Positions 4,575-57,600 of a DNA stretch of 64,000 bases are shown one piece after another (the first letter of the stretch is position 1; every line of letters begins with the position of its first letter). Source of the stretch: Neoechinorhynchus agilis. Taxonomy: Eukaryota > Animalia > Acanthocephala. The translations under genes and the position numbers were made by a program. Under the pieces are notes generated by a model, which had not been told where the DNA came from, did no database searches, and worked only from the letters and a program-made list of their open reading frames with translations. Location of the stretch: the NCBI GenBank assembly GCA_051530055.1, contig CM121342.1:4401489-4465488 (forward strand). The letters are read 5' to 3'.

Positions 4575-4790
4575 TATTTGATCAGTAAAGGCCCCGGAGC
4601 TGTAGCGACCGCAGCGGAAAGCGGCTGAGCTGAGGGAGAGCTTCCATTTCGTGCCTTTGGGGAATCGAAACGTTCGGGGCGTGGTCGATGGCGATGAAAA
4701 AGGACCCGAGTGCAACAGAATTCCTCAGACAAAACATCTCACTCGCAGTACAACGAGGGAATGCTGAGAACGCGTGAGAAAATCGCGGCT
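4575..4790 (+). mobile_element. Degenerate 3' end of a CRE-like non-LTR retrotransposon (RLE C-terminus)
   Basis: Broken frames read FHFVPLGIETFGAWS...EFLRQNISLAVQRGNA, matching the F.P..(V/I)ET.G.W...L.Q..S.A.QRGNA tail of RLE-bearing CRE-type elements. Confidence 0.75.
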
Positions 4791-4874
4791 ACACAGAACA
4801 TTACTTTCCAAAACTTGTAAATTTTGTCAAATAAAAAACTGAGATTATTTGATAATCTCGGTTTTTTATAACGT

Positions 4875-5190
4875 TGGACTGAGTTGCTCCACACTGCGTA
4901 CTCATGCTCATCTCCCAATGATAGAGCTCGTCTCCTGGCGGTCTCAGCTCCACACTCCAGCGACTTCTTGAAGGCTTTCCCGATCACGGCTGTTGGCACG
5001 AGGCTGGATGACCAAGCCATCACCGTCGCTGTGGGACTTCGGTTGGGCATCGAATTCTCAGGCTCAAATACGTGTCGGTGAGACAGTGATCGGGAGCTCA
5101 CGGCCTTGACTGCAAGCGTTCAAATGCTCGCTACGCACGGCACTCAAAAGAACCGGGTTTCCCGCTCGACTCGAACCAGTCGGACTTAAC
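4875..5190 (+). mobile_element. CRE-like non-LTR retrotransposon fragment (RT thumb/linker, CCHC knuckle, start of RLE)
   Basis: DRARLLAVSAPHSSDFLKAFPITAVGTRLDDQAITVAVGLRLG, then C-C-HGLDC...RHS and LEPVGL across frameshifts and stops. Confidence 0.8.
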
Positions 5191-5686
5191 GAAAAGTCGA
5201 TAATTTGATAAATCGCAACCAAAAAGCCCCTTCTAATTAATAAAATTCGTAAATTCTGGGGAGCAAAATGCTTTCATTCTTTTCTCGAGAAAGATGTGGT
5301 GGGTCACTTATCCGGGATTCGACGCGGAATGTTTCCTCCCTTCGTTGCGAGACGTTTCTTAATATGCGTAAATTAGGATAACCTAAAGTGCTTACGCTTT
5401 TTTTTCTAAAAAACAAACGCATACACATCAATGAGTTTGATGACGTCATGTAAGATTCTTCCAGAACAATGTCATCAATTATTGCTTCGTCTACTTCATT
5501 TTGGTGTTTCGTTGTTTTGTTCTCGAAAACTGAACGTTGGCCGGGCAGCGATGATATTTTGAAAATCCACAATGCCGGGAATTTCGATGTCTTGAGGCTT
5601 CTTCAAGACGTTGAAGGGAGCAACGAACATGCTGCACATCTCTAAGCGCCTTGGTAGATTCTTGAAAAAGCCGTAGGACTGCTACA

Positions 5687-8600
5687 ACTCTCGACAATAA
5701 AGATTTTTTCGCTTTTACGGCCCGCTCATTTCGAAAACAAAACATTAATCGTAAATTTAAAAACGAGACTGAGAATGGTTTTTGGTTGCGCTCAAACACA
5801 CAAAGTTAATAGTTTCATGTTGATCGCTGCTGTGTTTTATTGTTCGTTGTTGCATTTACCTTATCGCGAGACGTGTCATAAAAACCCTTTAAAACGGCGA
5901 AAACTCTCGACAATAAAGATTTTTTCGCTTTTACGGCCCGCTCATTTCGAAAACAAAACATTAATCGTAAATTTAAAAACGAGACAGAATGGTTTTTGGT
6001 TGCGCTCAAACACACACAGTTAATAGTTTCATGTTGATCGCTGCTGTATTTTAATGTTCGTTGTTGCATTTCCATCTTTATCGCGAGCACGCTATAAAAA
6101 CCTTTTAAAACGGCGAAAACTCTCGAGAGTAAAGATTTTTTCGCTTTTACGGCCCGCTCATTTCGAAAAAAAAACATTAATCGTAAATTTGAAACGAGAC
6201 TGAATATTTTTTAATATGCTCAAAAACACTCAAAGTTGTTGAATATGTTGATCGCTACAGATGATGATGCTGCATTTCCACCTTTAATTCCAGCACTTAT
6301 AAAACCTTTTAAAACGGCGGAAACTCGAGAGTAAAGATTTTTCGTTTTACGGCCCGCTCATTTCGAACACAAAACATTAATCGTAAATTTAAAAACGAGA
6401 CTGAGAATGGTTTTTGGTTGCGCTCAAACACACAAAGTTAATAGTTTCATGTTGATCGCTGCTGTATTTTAATGTTCATTGTTGCATTTCCATCTTTATC
6501 GCGAGCACGCTATAAAAACCCTTTAAAACGGCGAAAACTCTCGAGAATAAAGATTTTTTCCCTATTACGGTTCTGCTCATTTCGAAAACAAAACATTAAT
6601 CGTAAATTTAAAAACGAGACTGAGAATGGTTTTTGGTTGTCAAACAATATTAAAGTTAATAGTTTCATGTTGATCGCTGCTGTATTTTAATGTTCGTTGT
6701 TGCATTTCCATCTTTATCGCGAGCACGCTATAAAAACCCTTTAAAACGGCGAAAACTCTCGAGAGTAAAGATTTTTTCCCTATTACGGCCCGCTCATTTC
6801 GAAAACAAAACATTAATCGTAAATTTAAAAACGAGACTGAGAATGGTTTTTGGTTGCGCTCAAACACACAAAGTTAATAGTTTCATGTTGATAGCTGCTG
6901 TGTTTTATTGTTCGTTGTTGCATTTCCATCTTTATCGCGAGCACGCTATAAAAACCCTTAAAAACGGCGAAAACTCTCGAGAAATAAGATTTTTTTGCTA
7001 TTACGGCCCGCTCATTTCGAAAACAAAAACATTAATCGTAAATTTAAAAACGAGATAGAATGGTTTTTTTGGTTATGCCTAACACACAAAGTTAATAGTT
7101 TCATGTTGATCGCTGCTGTGTTTTATTGTCTGTTGCTTTACTCATCTTTATCGCGAGCACTCTATAAAACCTTTTAAAACGGCGAAAACTCTCGGAGTAA
7201 AGATTTTTCGCTTTTACGGCCCGCTCATTTCGAAAACAAAACATTAATCGTAAATTACTTAAAAACGAGACTGAGAATGAGCGGCTGTGCCTCAAAACAC
7301 ACAAAGTTAATAGTTTCATGTTGATCGCTGCTGTATTTTAATGTTCGTTGTTGCATTTCCATCTTTATCGCTAGCACGCTATAAAAACCTTTTAAAACGG
7401 CGAAAAATCTCGAGAATAAAGATTTTTTCGCTTTTACGGCCCGCTCATTTCGAAAACAAAACATTAATCGTAAATTTAAAAACGAGACCGAGAATGGTTT
7501 TTGGTTGGCTTCAACACAAAAGTTAATAGTTTCATGTTGATCGCTGCTGTATTTTAATGTTCGTTGTTGCATTTCCATCTTTATTTTGCGAGCACTCTAT
7601 AAAAACTCCCCTTTAAAACAGCGAAAACTCTCGAGAATAAAGATTTTTTCGCTTTTACGGCCCGCTCATTTCGAAAACAAAACATTAATCGTAAATTTAA
7701 AAACGAGACAGAATGGTTTTTGGTTGCGCTCAAACACACAAAGTTAATAGTTTCATGTTGATCGCTGCTGTGTTTTATTGTTCGTTGTTGCATTTCCATC
7801 TTTATCGCCAGCACTCTATAAAAACCTTTTAAAACGGCGAAAACTCTCGAGAATAAAGATTTTTTCGCTTTTACGGCCCGCTCATTTCGAAAACAAAACA
7901 TTAATCGTAAATTTAAAAACGAGACTGAGAATGGTTTTTTGTTGCGCTCAAACACACAAAGTTAATAGTTTCATGTTGATCGCTGCTGTATTTTAATGTT
8001 CGTTGTTGCATTTCCATCTTTATCGCGAGCACCCTATAAAAACCCTTTAAAACGGCGAAAACTCTCGAGAATAAAGATTTTTTCGCTATTACGGCCCGCT
8101 CATTTCGAAAACAAAACATTAATCGTAAATTTAAAAACGAGACTGAGAATGGTTTTTGGTTGCGCTCAAACACACAAAGTTAATAGTTTCATGTTGATCG
8201 CTGCTGTGTTTTAATGTTCGTTGTTGCATTTCCATCTTTATCGCGAGCACCCTATAAAAACCTTTTAAAACGGCGAAAACTCTCGAGAGTAAAGATTTTT
8301 TCCCTATTACGGCCCGCTCATTTCGAAAACAAAACATTAATCGTAAATTTAAAAACGAGACTGAGAATGGTTTTTGGTTGCGCTCAAACACACAAAGTTA
8401 ATAGTTTCATGTTGATCGCTGCTGTGTTTTAATGTTCGTTGTTGCATTTCCATCTTTATCGCGAGCACGCTATAAAAACCCTTTAAAACGGCGAAAACTC
8501 TCGAGAATAAAGATTTTTTCGCTATTACGGCCCGCTCATTTCGAAAACAAAAGATTAATCGTAAATTTAAAGACTGAGAATGGTTTTTGGTTGCGCTCAA

Positions 8601-19662: not shown

Positions 19663-21970
19663 ACTCTCAACCTCCGATTCCGACCTTAAACTCGACATTT
19701 TCAAGCTGATATTTTGGATATGAAAATAGACGTAATTATCATTTTTTTGCGACGAATGAAAAGTTGGGTAGAACAGTTTTCGGCGTTCTACATTTTTATT
19801 CCTTTTAAAAAATGATTTATTCTGTGAGTCCACTTTCTCTTTCGATAAAAGAAAGAAAACTTTTAGGTTTTAGGCTTTTTTCTTAGGAATTTCGGTGATT
19901 AAATGTTCATTTTAAAATCCCTATGATTGTTCGCTGCAAAGAATTTCTTATATGAATCGGAGTTAGAAACCGAAAATGCTGACAAGAGGAAACGCGCTGA
20001 TTATTGGCCATTAAATTATTTTGATAAAAAATAGGTCTTTGTTTTATTAAGTTTAAATAAAACTTTATCAACCAAAGGATTTTTTCTCTCTCAATGAATT
20101 ATCATCGTTTATGCGGTGAATGAAAAGTTGGGTACCAAAGTTTTCCTAAATCCAAGGATAACGCTTTTCATGACTTCGAGCAGTTTAATTCGATCAAAAA
20201 AAATAACTCCGATGGCTACGACAACCACATCTTCCATTCTCGAATTGGCCGATACGATGAAATCGAAAAGAGACAAATCCATCGAATAATCCCAATTTCT
20301 TTATGTCAGTGAAAAAATACGTTTGTTGGTCATAAAACGATTCCATCAAATCAGAAAAATAACCGTTTTCAATTTAAAATTCATTGCCGATATTGAAACT
20401 CTCAATCTTGTGAGCAGCCATTTCAAATTACGACAGTCCAAAAAATGATTGTTACTACAAAATCCCAAGAAACTGTTTTCAAAAGATTTAAAATGCCTTA
20501 CCAACGGAAAAACTTGGAAGGCGATACGAAAATTGGTAAATGGACGTTGAGGAAAAACCCTGAATTAACTCGCAAGAAAATTCTCAATTCGGAAACGTTT
20601 TATAGAAGAAAACAAAATTCATTTTGGAGACGGATTCATGGAATCGAAAATGACGCATAAAACGAGAGCCCTATGAAAAAATCTAAGGACAAAAAAAAAT
20701 CGAGACTCGATTTACCGATCGATTTATCTTTATTTTCCATTTAAAGGGGAAAGCGCGAACGCAATCCCCACACCCAAAATTTCCATTCCCGAGTTTCCCC
20801 GATTTGGAGAAATCGCAGACGTCAGCCACCGCCGAAGTGCAATGGAAGGGCCTCTGTCCGGGAGAACGGCCTTCCTGATCACCGTCAACTCCGGAACCAG
20901 GTAAGTATGCCGAAAACGGGAAATCCCGGTTTTTTACTCTTCCATCATTTCGCTACATGAAACTTCCTGGGTTCTATCGTCATACTTAAATTATTCTTTT
21001 TAATTATTTGGTTTTTGTAACTTTTATTTGTTATGGACTTGAGACAGTTCCTAATGATTGAAATGCAACAAAGAAATTCAATTTTTTAATCGCGTTGTTC
21101 TATTTTGTAATCAAAAAACTTTCGATTTAATTTGTCGAAATCCAATGTGAAAGCAATTAATGTTTTAGAAAAATTCATATTTTTTTCATAAACCAAATCT
21201 TTTTGTTTCGTTCGATCACGGTTATTATTGGATTTTGAACGAATCTCCGTAGATATTTTTCCGTTTGATCTGTGCTGATTAAAGTGTGAATCGAAAAGTT
21301 ATTAATTTTGTAAAAAAAGACGAATATTCAGTTAGACAAATTTGCAAGATTTTTATACGACGTTCCGAATATTGTACAAAATCAATCATTCGTTTTAATG
21401 TATTTCAATATCGATTAAATCCATAATGAATATTGGTAATAATTTAATTCTAATAATTTTTATTTGCAGTCTAAGAATAAATTTAGTTCTGTTCAGAGTT
21501 TTAGGCGTCATTGAAAAAAACTGGAACCTAATAATCCCGACGATTCGTTTTGCGTTCACAGCCAAGAAAATCAGAAGCTTTACGACGATGTCGTATTTAA
21601 AAAAATTCATTTGTATTTTCCGTAAAAATTAAAAGAATTGATTCCAATATTTCGGCACAATCTTGTACGCCTTTATCACGGTTTTTAATTATTAATAAAC
21701 GTTTAAGCATCCACGAGGTTGTTCCCAAATATTGAAATCAATAAATTCTTTTAATTTTTATACTCAATTCAAAACATTTTTAAAATTATTGGTGTTTTTA
21801 TTTAAATTCTGCCATAATGAACCTTTTTTTAATATGTTTTTGGCAATTTTACATAGATTTGATTGTTGTTGATTTTGACATCGTGTTCTGCGCACACAAA
21901 AAGGTCTTTGATGAACATTTGCTACTTTTTGGGCCGGAAACCTAAAGTTAAATTTTCGTGAAGATTGTGA

Positions 21971-50627: not shown

Positions 50628-52352
<1,725 letters not shown>

Positions 52353-53471: not shown

Positions 53472-54302
53472 TAAAAAAGAATTAAAAAAGTGGACCTTTA
53501 GCGCATGGTTTACCCGAATAATAATAAATTGTGCAACAGCTACGATAATTTTGATCCAAGTGAAGCTTTCCAATAAAACCAAGTTGTTATTTTCACGTTA
53601 ATGCTAAGTGCAAATCAAAAATACGCGTTCATATTTCCGATATGGATTTTTTTTCGGCTAACAAGATTTCTTGAGGTAGCATTCGTTTTGCCAAGAAAAG
53701 CATTTTCATTCTTTTTTATACCATATTTCTTGTTCGTAATATTTTTGTCTTTATCAATCTATCACTAAGAAGACATTGGAATGAATGATGCGAAATCGAA
53801 TTTAACGTTCTACGTAACGGATCCGCCGATGGAAGTGGTACAATCGTGTGTTTTTTATAAGGGATTTTGAGTAAGCAAACCGAGTTTTTACAGTCTACCT
53901 GATTTAATATTGCTCTAAATTGAGCTCTTAACCTTAGTTCTCATGGTTATTGCTTAATTACGCCAGAAAAACGTTAATGTTTAATGGCTCAAAATATCAA
54001 GCTGAAGAAAACATTTGTTATGGTTTATGGCATATTTCTAATTCCAGATAGAGCAATAAGTTTACATTACCTAATAGACTAAGAATCTTGCCGACATATC
54101 AGCTTTTTTATTGGCCTTGTTAGCTCGACTTAACAAATAGTCCGTTGTTAGTTGTCCTTTGGGTCATTGTTAAAGGTCGTCACTTGGACAAATATGAAAA
54201 AAAGGCTATTTTTCAAGAATTATTGCTTCTAACAACATTAAGAATGTTTCCGATAAGCAAACAGATTTTTATACGTTGCCGAATCCTGTAACCGGTGTTG
54301 TC

Positions 54303-55008
54303 GTTACTCATTTATTTTTGAGAAATATTTCGCACGGTTTTCTTTGCCTCTTCAGTCGTTATTGTTTGCAAGTTTTAAATGTGTGAGTTCGCACACATTT
54401 AAAATTTACAATCAATAGCGACTGAAGAGGCAAGGAAAACCTTGTGAAATATTTCTCAAATAAATGAGTATCTATAGCACCGGGGACAGAATTCGCCAAG
54501 ACACCAACTCACACATTTAAAACTTAAAAGCAATAGCGACTGAAGAGGCAAGGAAAACCTTGTGAAATATTTCTCAAATAAATAAATGAGTATCTATAGC
54601 ACCGGGGACAGAATTCGCCAAGACACCAACTCACACATTTAAAACTTAGAAGCAATAGCGACTGAAGAGGCAAGGAAAACCTTGTGAAATATTTCTCAAA
54701 TAAATAAATAAGTATCTAAATTCGCCAAGACACCAACTCACACATTTAAAACTTAGAAGCAATAGCGACTGAAGAGGCAAGGAAAACCTTGTGAAATATT
54801 TCTCAAATAAATAAAGACACCAACTCACACATTTAAAACTTAGAAGCAATAGCGACTGAAGAGGCAAGGAAAACCTTGCGAAATATTTCTCAAATAAATA
54901 AATAAGTATCTAAATTCGCCAAGACACCAACTCACACATTTAAAACTTAGAAGCAATAGCGACTGAAGAGGCAAGGAAAACCTTGTGAAATATTTCTCAA
55001 ATAAATAA
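54303..55008 (+). ncRNA. Tandem array of minimal hammerhead ribozyme motifs: 6 direct copies plus 1 inverted copy
   Basis: CUGAAGA G GCAAGG-AAAA-CCUUG(U/C) GAAA UAUUUCUC at 54422, 54540, 54662, 54769, 54856 and 54963; inverted copy with tcttcag at 54349-54355. Confidence 0.75.
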
Positions 55009-55406
55009 AAAATTCCTCAGTTGAAAGTGTGGACGGATTTTGTACTCTGGTTGCAAACAACAATAACTAAAAATCGAAATTCTTTTTTTGCAATTTCCAA
55101 AACTATCCCTTTGAGAAAATATCCTTGAGTTTAGTGGATGACAATACGAAGTGTCAACTTCTATCAAATGCACAATACATCAATAGACATCGTCTTTAGG
55201 ACTACTTCCATGATGCCTAGATAATAACGCAAGTGCGGCGGTCTAGTCTAAGTATTGCTGGAATATGCAAGTCTGAAAGTGTGTTTACATGCTGGAACAA
55301 CACATAGTTTTGTGATATGATTATATGGAAATGTGATACTGTTTCCCAAAGATCCATTTACACCTTCAAAATCACAAAATTTATCGATTTATACGCTTTA
55401 AGGACT

Positions 55407-57562: not shown

Positions 57563-57600
57563 AAACTGATGATGAACCCGTCGAGGTTCGAAACGTCTTT
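57563..57600 (+). ncRNA. Minimal type I hammerhead ribozyme motif (Penelope-type)
   Basis: aaa CUGAUGA U GAACC-cgucga-GGUUC GAAA CGUC uuu, followed by aataaa; intact core, GUC triplet, palindromic ACGU stem III. Confidence 0.8.

Follow-up and report, generated by a model that had tools for sequence, protein, structure and literature searches.

A short tandem array with minimal hammerhead motifs, probably derived from a Penelope-like retrotransposon, in the acanthocephalan Neoechinorhynchus agilis

The hammerhead-bearing repeats found at positions 54270-55009 of the window, the 64,000-nt stretch of N. agilis DNA analysed here (assembly GCA_051530055.1, contig CM121342.1, positions 4,401,489 to 4,465,488), very probably represent, in tandem, a non-autonomous form that arose by internal deletion from a canonical Penelope-like retrotransposon (PLE), which encodes a reverse transcriptase (RT) with a C-terminal GIY-YIG domain. 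Elements of this kind are known, although not usually so short, and the array is no new type of ribozyme replicon. Minimal hammerhead ribozymes (min-HHRs) in PLEs and retrozyme-like derivatives are already known; the new points are how short the unit is, what exactly it is composed of and the predicted geometry between the cut and the ATG. In this thorny-headed worm a line of descent can be traced from an autonomous PLE to a deletion derivative, solitary insertions and arrays, which is relevant to the view, currently proposed, that the retrozymes of animals derive from PLEs as non-autonomous elements.

Organization of the array in the window

The array consists of six direct units and one inverted head copy, all of which carry the hammerhead motif, reading CUGAAGA-G-GCAAGG-AAAA-CCUUG(U/C)-GAAA-UAUUUC in each unit. 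The direct units, on the forward strand, start at 54392, 54510, 54632, 54739, 54826 and 54933, the sixth ending at 55009, and their CTGAAGAG cores start at 54422, 54540, 54662, 54769, 54856 and 54963. The core-to-core spacings of 118, 122, 107, 87 and 107 bp given in the initial annotation were confirmed by these core starts and by repeat finders, which returned seven in-register copies of TTG(T/C)GAAATATTTC spaced 124, 118, 122, 107, 87 and 107 nt apart and, with Tandem Repeats Finder, periods of 122, 107 and 87 nt together with a higher-order period of 194 nt at 99% matches.

Unit 1 (118 nt; 54392-54509) has its hammerhead core at 54422-54455, with the cut predicted between 54453 and 54454, and unit 2 (122 nt; 54510-54631) has its core at 54540-54573. 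Relative to the 122-nt unit, the shorter ones carry nested deletions (122 > 107 > 87), as had been claimed for a progressively deleted spacer, and it is part of the segment corresponding to the ORF start that is gone from the 107- and 87-nt units. Unit 3 (107 nt; 54632-54738; core 54662-54695) lacks 15 nt of this segment and unit 4 (87 nt; 54739-54825; core 54769-54802) nearly all of it; these are followed by unit 5 (107 nt; 54826-54932; core 54856-54889) and by unit 6 (54933-55009; core 54963-54996), which is broken off after AAATAAATAAA and has no canonical 3' end or tail. A 194-bp higher-order repeat made of a 107-nt and an 87-nt unit is present in two forward-strand copies (54620-54813 and 54814-55007, within 54620-55007), whose 99% identity indicates a recent DNA-level duplication of part of the array. 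Around the array, neither a target duplication nor the 40-nt tail was found beyond chance 8-mers.

The inverted head copy, or short arm (about 54270-54385, reverse strand), is 85% identical to the unit and carries its own min-HHR copy at 54322-54355 on the same strand; its outer end corresponds to an RT start site of the CGTA(C/T)A type, without a tail. The earlier description of a seventh copy that is inverted and joined through a hairpin near 54389 was upheld, the segments 54317-54385 and 54392-54460 being 90% complementary over 69 nt on either side of a 6-nt head-to-head junction loop (54386-54391). If transcribed, the inverted head and unit 1 (54276-54509) would form a hairpin of about 110 bp with a predicted free energy of -138 kcal/mol (z = -19). 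It is this long hairpin that accounts for the sub-threshold plant MIR hairpins, the only matches returned here by an Rfam scan of the window at gathering thresholds and of the array region at E <= 10, with scores far under the gathering scores (88 vs 230 bits). For annotation purposes such arrays and hairpins should be masked as PLE-derived sequence and not treated as miRNA-like hairpins or satellites.

Just 3' of the array, at 55030-55075, lies a degenerate piece resembling a unit end and linker (GGACGGATT...TTGCAAACAACAATAAC) without a hammerhead, which may be an older, decayed unit. Elsewhere in the window, an ORF fragment on the reverse strand at 51226-51690, about 2.6 kb upstream of the array, gives strong TPR_12 and TPR_10 matches (E = 5e-31) and is probably an exon of a TPR-repeat gene, and a full-length U1 spliceosomal RNA gene lies at 20744-20908, also on the reverse strand (127.9 bits vs a gathering score of 69.5).

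The hammerhead motif

The conserved motif reported for each unit proved to be present throughout, with the CUGAAGA...GAAA-UA-U-U boxes in 7/7 window copies and in at least 126 of the 129 family copies sampled. A G is bulged after CUGAAGA, leaving an unpaired nucleotide between A9 and position 10.1, and a bulge after A9 was likewise found in all five min-HHR families of the genome by a descriptor that permitted either none or one. In the window the 10.1-11.1 pair is G-C only in copy 5 (TTGCGAAA) and G.U in the others (TTGTGAAA), exactly as first noted; among the 129 family copies it is G-C in 28, G.U in 91 and A-U in 4. C11.1 is located in a CpG, where a C/T polymorphism is seen, and the other four families always have G-C at this pair. 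Helix II has 6 bp and is close to invariant within the family, hence the little covariation that it displays.

At the position of helix III (GAAAUAUUUC) the sequence A15.1-U-A-U16.1 is palindromic and there is no loop 3, the corresponding 15.2-16.2 region of the other families being AU, CG or UAUA. A palindromic helix III that lacks loop 3 implies that the active form would be a dimer, with pairing between two copies. The cleavage register had been considered ambiguous between an AUU and a UUC triplet, an ambiguity that the palindrome removes: with A15.1, U15.2, A16.2 and U16.1 followed by U17, the cut is predicted before U1.1, at GAAAUAUU^UC.

Helix I, already described as weak, reads U-A, C-G, U.C, C-G in the six direct copies of the window (UCUC opposite AGCGA), and the U.C mismatch at 1.3-2.3 is the commonest state in the family (75/129 copies). 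One autonomous subfamily has UCGA/UCGA instead, a second has UCUA/UAGA, and UCGC/GCGA is found in many units of arrays. These changes, at 1.3-2.3 and 1.4-2.4, are compensatory, and helix I of the autonomous copies comprises 4 bp. Over 78 distinct copies, helix I covariation was 0.105 vs 0.091 +/- 0.005 after shuffling (reached in 0/500 shuffles), and 0.013-0.032 when the partners were slid. The minimum free energy (MFE) structure of the 58-nt autonomous motif is exactly helix I and helix II around an open core (-10.5 kcal/mol, z = -2.4); that of a window copy keeps helix II and not helix I, and is not a hammerhead fold (z = -1.0). Predicted cleavage in the copies of the window is probably weak or lost.

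Preferential conservation of the core across genomic copies, the absence of which the initial annotation had counted among the grounds for refuting its proposal, was observed, the 34-nt core being 2-3 times less variable than its flanks (0.028 vs 0.044-0.099 in arrays and 0.050 vs 0.09-0.14 in dispersed copies), a contrast that is possibly somewhat inflated as the copies were picked by whole-unit BLAST. Rfam hammerhead models need a helix III and a closed loop. Since min-HHRs are devoid of helix III and loop 1, no Rfam hammerhead match was expected, and none was obtained at E <= 10 in 54200-55100, nor with RF00163 (Hammerhead_1) over the genome at E <= 1 among the 73 scored of 9,621 candidates. 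Judged from its boxes, its palindrome without loop 3 and its position in a PLE repeat, the motif is a dimer-type minimal hammerhead of a Penelope-like element, the attribution already made in outline, with catalysis that is predicted from this architecture.

The autonomous partner and the composition of the unit

An autonomous PLE with RT and GIY-YIG domains sharing the same repeat, for which the initial annotation had advised a genome search, does exist and carries an identical motif. At many loci a GIY-YIG match is followed, some 330 bp downstream and on the same strand, by the identical 34-nt motif. Domain analysis was done on a 745-aa copy (locus L063, C2:12243000-12252999; ORF 4705-6942), which gave RVT_1 at aa 334-508 (E = 4e-12) and GIY-YIG at aa 691-725, the latter with 21.7 bits, slightly below the cut-off of 22.6 bits; sister copies (locus L064) scored 23.2-25.4 bits. 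NCBIfam models returned for the L063 ORF a generic RT and a group I intron endonuclease (aa 690-735) and nothing else, and a PDB sequence search with the autonomous ORF gave no match. Its database relatives are RT proteins of about 800 aa with 25-33% identity, mostly found on 2.7-3.4-kb contigs, and a Pfam scan of two of them returned RVT_1 only. [quoted passage not shown]

The tandem unit of this element is very compact. From the motif copy at C2:12252839 to that at 12255404 the distance is 2,565 bp, an interval filled by an 826-aa open frame, with only about 85 nt between successive ORFs. In the autonomous copies (L064) the motif begins 42 nt past the stop codon; between the predicted cut and the ATG of the next copy there are 10 nt, and an in-frame TAA stands right before this ATG. 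If the hammerhead were catalytic, cleavage in the autonomous element would give an RNA that starts 10 nt ahead of the ATG.

Comparison with the autonomous copies reveals how the array unit is composed. Upstream of AGCGA-CUGAAGA the autonomous copies read ...CCTCCATTTTAGATATCGA, and the array units and most short insertions read GACACCAACTCACACATTTAAAACTTACAAGCAATAGCGA. Downstream, the segment that follows the leader (ATGAGTATCGATAACACCGGGGACAGGATTCGCCAA) is the start of the PLE ORF. The AAUAAA run that was said to follow the units is indeed there; it is in reality the 10-nt leader and ATG of the retrotransposon ORF, and not a poly(A) signal. The full unit of about 118-122 nt is thus made of a 35-nt linker, the min-HHR and the first ~50 nt of the PLE ORF region. 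As the linker differs from the autonomous upstream sequence, the ~118-nt unit is non-autonomous, and the 35-nt linker takes the place of about 2.4 kb.

Solitary insertions and other arrays of the family

When 194 nt of the array served as the query, at least 143 places in the 46-Mb assembly were matched, and the 34-nt motif at up to 3 mismatches was found 321 times in the genome, with 0 matches of the reversed pattern. Part of the family is organised in long arrays of 109-122-nt units, located mainly on contig C3; the other part comprises many solitary insertions, nearly all of which are head-to-head inverted pairs. In 15/15 pairs examined the anatomy is identical, with outer ends unequal by 32 nt: arm A terminates at ...GCCAACGTAC(AAT), i.e. 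CGTAC(AAT), and arm B extends 32 nt further, through a tail, to ...CAAATTCACCCCGAGGACAATGATATATG(ACA). There are two discrete 3' ends in an AC-rich stretch within the ORF start, CGTAC(AAT) and GAUAUAUG(ACA). The inner junction is variable between pairs, and the pairs are flanked by AT-rich target duplications of 9-15 bp. Unequal ends, variable duplications and variable inner junctions constitute the signature of PLE insertion and exclude a cut-and-paste mechanism. Arm identity is 0.93 within pairs vs 0.90 between pairs, values too close to judge a single-template origin.

The furthest 5' reach of the solitary copies is CACGAACTC.... Most dispersed arms run through the predicted cut site; retention of sequence 5' of the cut indicates that the template RNA of these copies was uncleaved. 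A few arms begin 2-8 nt downstream of the predicted cut, and junctions read by eye gave no clear enrichment of 5' ends at the cut itself.

In the array at C3:5.506 Mb an inverted short arm and a first direct copy with autonomous-type upstream sequence are followed by nine 118-nt units and then by a last unit that closes with the canonical tail, so that both canonical PLE ends are kept; a tail closes the array at C3:6.46 Mb as well. At C3:5.467 Mb the array has its first nucleotide at the predicted cut or no more than 2 nt from it, and ends in GCCA. The junctions between array units, GCCAA|GACAC, correspond to the ends of linear units and to the furthest 5' limit of the solitary copies, and not to the cut site. 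This arrangement fits an end-to-end joining of linear copies better than the joining of circles delimited by the ribozyme, and GCCAA is a possible third RT start site, used at array junctions.

At three loci there are higher-order arrays that repeat an entire PLE-type insertion together with adjoining DNA from outside the element. Those at C3:3846.4-3847.4 kb (225-bp repeat unit) and C3:1001.1-1002.3 kb (209-bp repeat unit) contain an inverted arm, a direct arm and a tail, and the one at C1:3824.3-3825.2 kb (repeat unit of about 262 bp) contains direct units only. The flanking DNA included in the repeats points to DNA-level amplification of complete insertions.

Origin of the array

By analogy with characterized PLEs, the structure in the window would have been placed by the PLE machinery, with both cut target strands priming reverse transcription on the element RNA, from which the inverted head would result, and the concatenated units may have come from template jumping or from a multi-unit template. 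The dimer-type min-HHR would pair A15.1-U-A-U16.1 between two copies and could cut at the predicted site. Later DNA-level change, which can be read directly from the sequence, consists of the nested deletions, the duplication of the 194-bp block and the loss of the 3' end. What remains in the window seems to be an old insertion of PLE origin, altered since then at the DNA level by deletion and renewed duplication.

How much of the tandem arrangement arose at the RNA level can be read in more than one way. The chances are about even that the array is an ordinary minisatellite grown by unequal exchange from a dead PLE fragment, in which the hammerhead-like sequence is functionless here, as inherited baggage. 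The 99% identity of the 194-bp higher-order repeat, the nested deletions, the truncated last unit with neither tail nor target duplication and the mismatched helix I would all follow from such a history, but the other arrays of the family that keep both PLE ends, the 5' inverted arm and the 3' tail, argue for multi-unit insertion. At the window locus the minisatellite origin is compatible with derivation from the PLE, from which it differs only by denying that the tandem arose at the RNA level.

It is unlikely that the array is an active, ultra-small retrozyme, whose RNA would self-cleave to 87-122-nt monomers that are circularised and then copied by the PLE RT in rolling-circle fashion to give arrays. 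Such a cycle would be consistent with the tandem arrangement of a dimer-type hammerhead, with the many arrays of 109-122-nt units on C3, with a core more conserved than its flanks, with the C3:5.467 Mb array that starts at or near the predicted cut and ends in GCCA, and with the published link between PLEs and retrozymes (PMC7229834; 10.64898/2026.07.22.740005). However, unit junctions match the 5' limit of dispersed linear copies and not the cut, and the tail that closes the arrays at C3:5.506 and C3:6.46 Mb is missing from their internal units and cannot be encoded by a 118-nt circle; furthermore, most dispersed arms cross the cut site and their 5' ends show no clear pile-up there. In the window itself, the copies have a mismatched helix I and a non-hammerhead MFE structure, the 107- and 87-nt units are short of the ORF-start region to which the RT-binding and initiation site of a related element maps (PMC11167929), the array has no canonical 3' tail or target duplication, and the 99%-identical 194-bp block indicates growth partly by DNA-level duplication. 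As far as this locus is concerned, the genomic data do not point to an ultra-small replicon that cleaves itself and circularises. For the family at large, it is likewise doubtful that the ~118-nt units are a working minimal PLE parasite, transcribed from arrays, cut by the dimeric hammerhead and possibly circularised; its active members would be intact ones elsewhere in the genome, the C3 arrays with a UCGC/GCGA helix I and canonical ends, and not the window locus, and its units, if it were real, would be the smallest hammerhead-bearing retroelement or circular RNA known in animals.

A foldback or MITE DNA transposon, or a hairpin or miRNA precursor with chance CUGANGA...GAAA boxes in its arms, is hardly credible and the transposon version was rejected: the near-perfect 110-bp hairpin of the head (-138 kcal/mol, z = -19), the sub-threshold plant MIR matches and the inverted pairing of dispersed copies would agree with it, but the outer ends are systematically unequal by 32 nt, with the tail on one arm only in 15/15 pairs, the duplications vary from 9 to 15 bp and the inner junctions vary as well, the sequence is continuous with the RT/GIY-YIG ORF, and the MIR scores (88 vs 230 bits) are due solely to the length of the hairpin.

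Comparison with published systems

Minimal hammerheads have been reported in the pseudo-LTRs of metazoan PLEs (Cervera & de la Pena 2014, PMC4209133), with an extra nucleotide after A9, G10.1-C11.1, a long helix II and a palindromic 15.2-16.2 without loop 3 as their hallmarks, and with poor cleavage in vitro. The N. agilis motif shares with them the CUGANGA and GAAA boxes, the extra nucleotide between A9 and 10.1, a 6-bp helix II, the absence of loop 3 with a palindromic 15.2-16.2, and the location in a repeat flanking an RT/GIY-YIG ORF. The short helix I, of 4 bp, is seen in the autonomous copies, and G10.1-C11.1 in a minority of the family copies, most of them, including 5/6 direct units, having G.U. 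Hundreds of solitary genome copies, some of them in close pairs on opposite strands, are a further likeness, and the U.C mismatch in helix I of most non-autonomous copies is a difference.

Hammerhead-bearing PLE families have already been reported from an acanthocephalan by Craig et al. (2021, PMC8557442), who described PLE insertions as partial tandems with an adjacent inverted 5'-truncated copy and a 30-40-bp tail that is often one-ended. Frangieh et al. (2024, PMC11167929) showed for a PLE protein that it cuts both strands of the target and extends them, and that RT initiates at two adjacent internal sites near the ORF start, the tail being the stretch between them; in their Anolis element the RT recognition and initiation site is in the ORF-start region, and in this sole biochemically tested PLE ribozyme cleavage is dispensable for insertion. 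The insertions described here resemble those of both studies in their head-to-head pairs, one-ended 32-nt tail, two discrete 3' ends in an AC-rich ORF start, AT-rich targets, variable duplications and heavy 5' truncation. The initiation sites here are some 50 and 85 nt from the ORF start, as against 111-118 nt in the published element. In the worm element, whose unit measures 2,565 bp, the motif lies in the 85 nt between ORFs and the cut is predicted 10 nt before the ATG, unlike the Anolis Poseidon element, which is cut 26 nt after the ATG (PMC11167929). The short unit, the predicted cut 10 nt upstream of the ATG and the two (possibly three) 3' ends may guide experiments on RT initiation in PLEs and on the role of the ribozyme.

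Animal non-LTR retrozymes have been linked to PLEs (Cervera & de la Pena 2020, PMC7229834; Li et al. 2026 preprint, 10.64898/2026.07.22.740005), and the preprint derives them from autonomous PLEs. Like retrozymes, the array is made of short AT-rich tandem units that each bear a type-I hammerhead, and is non-autonomous alongside autonomous PLEs. The units of retrozymes measure about 150-450 bp and their hammerheads are canonical, loops 1 and 2 being in contact, whereas the array has the minimal PLE hammerhead, with an open, weak helix I and no closed loop 1, in units of 87-122 bp, which are indeed shorter than those of known animal retrozymes, as was first remarked; these differences set it apart from retrozymes as they are defined. 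Circular RNAs have been shown for retrozymes. A further difference is that the junctions of the array are at linear unit ends and not at the cut site.

Other minimal hammerheads in the genome

When the min-HHR descriptor was run on sampled genomic sequence, four further families of the same architecture were recovered, with 0 in reversed sequence; their helices II are GGCC/GGCC, GUCCAGU/AUUGGAC, GAACC/GGUUC and GUGA/UCGC. By this descriptor there are at least four other min-HHR families in the genome. One of them is represented in the window by a solitary min-HHR of a different PLE family at 57566-57597 on the forward strand (CUGAUGA-U-GAACC-CGUCGA-GGUUC-GAAA-CG-UC, helix I UUU/AAA), a motif with 270 genome copies at up to 3 mismatches and 0 in the reversed control. 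At C1:19020807-19020995 a hammerhead of this type and one of the array type occupy opposite strands some 125 nt from each other, suggesting that PLEs inserted there one inside the other or side by side. At C2:5204799-5213238 a tandem with a 411-nt period has in each unit an N-terminal GIY-YIG motif and a min-HHR. Like the array in the window, it is a tandem of an RT-less PLE stump with a min-HHR; it belongs to a different PLE family, with a GGCC/GGCC helix II, and its unit retains the 3' coding end, whereas the window unit retains the ORF start.
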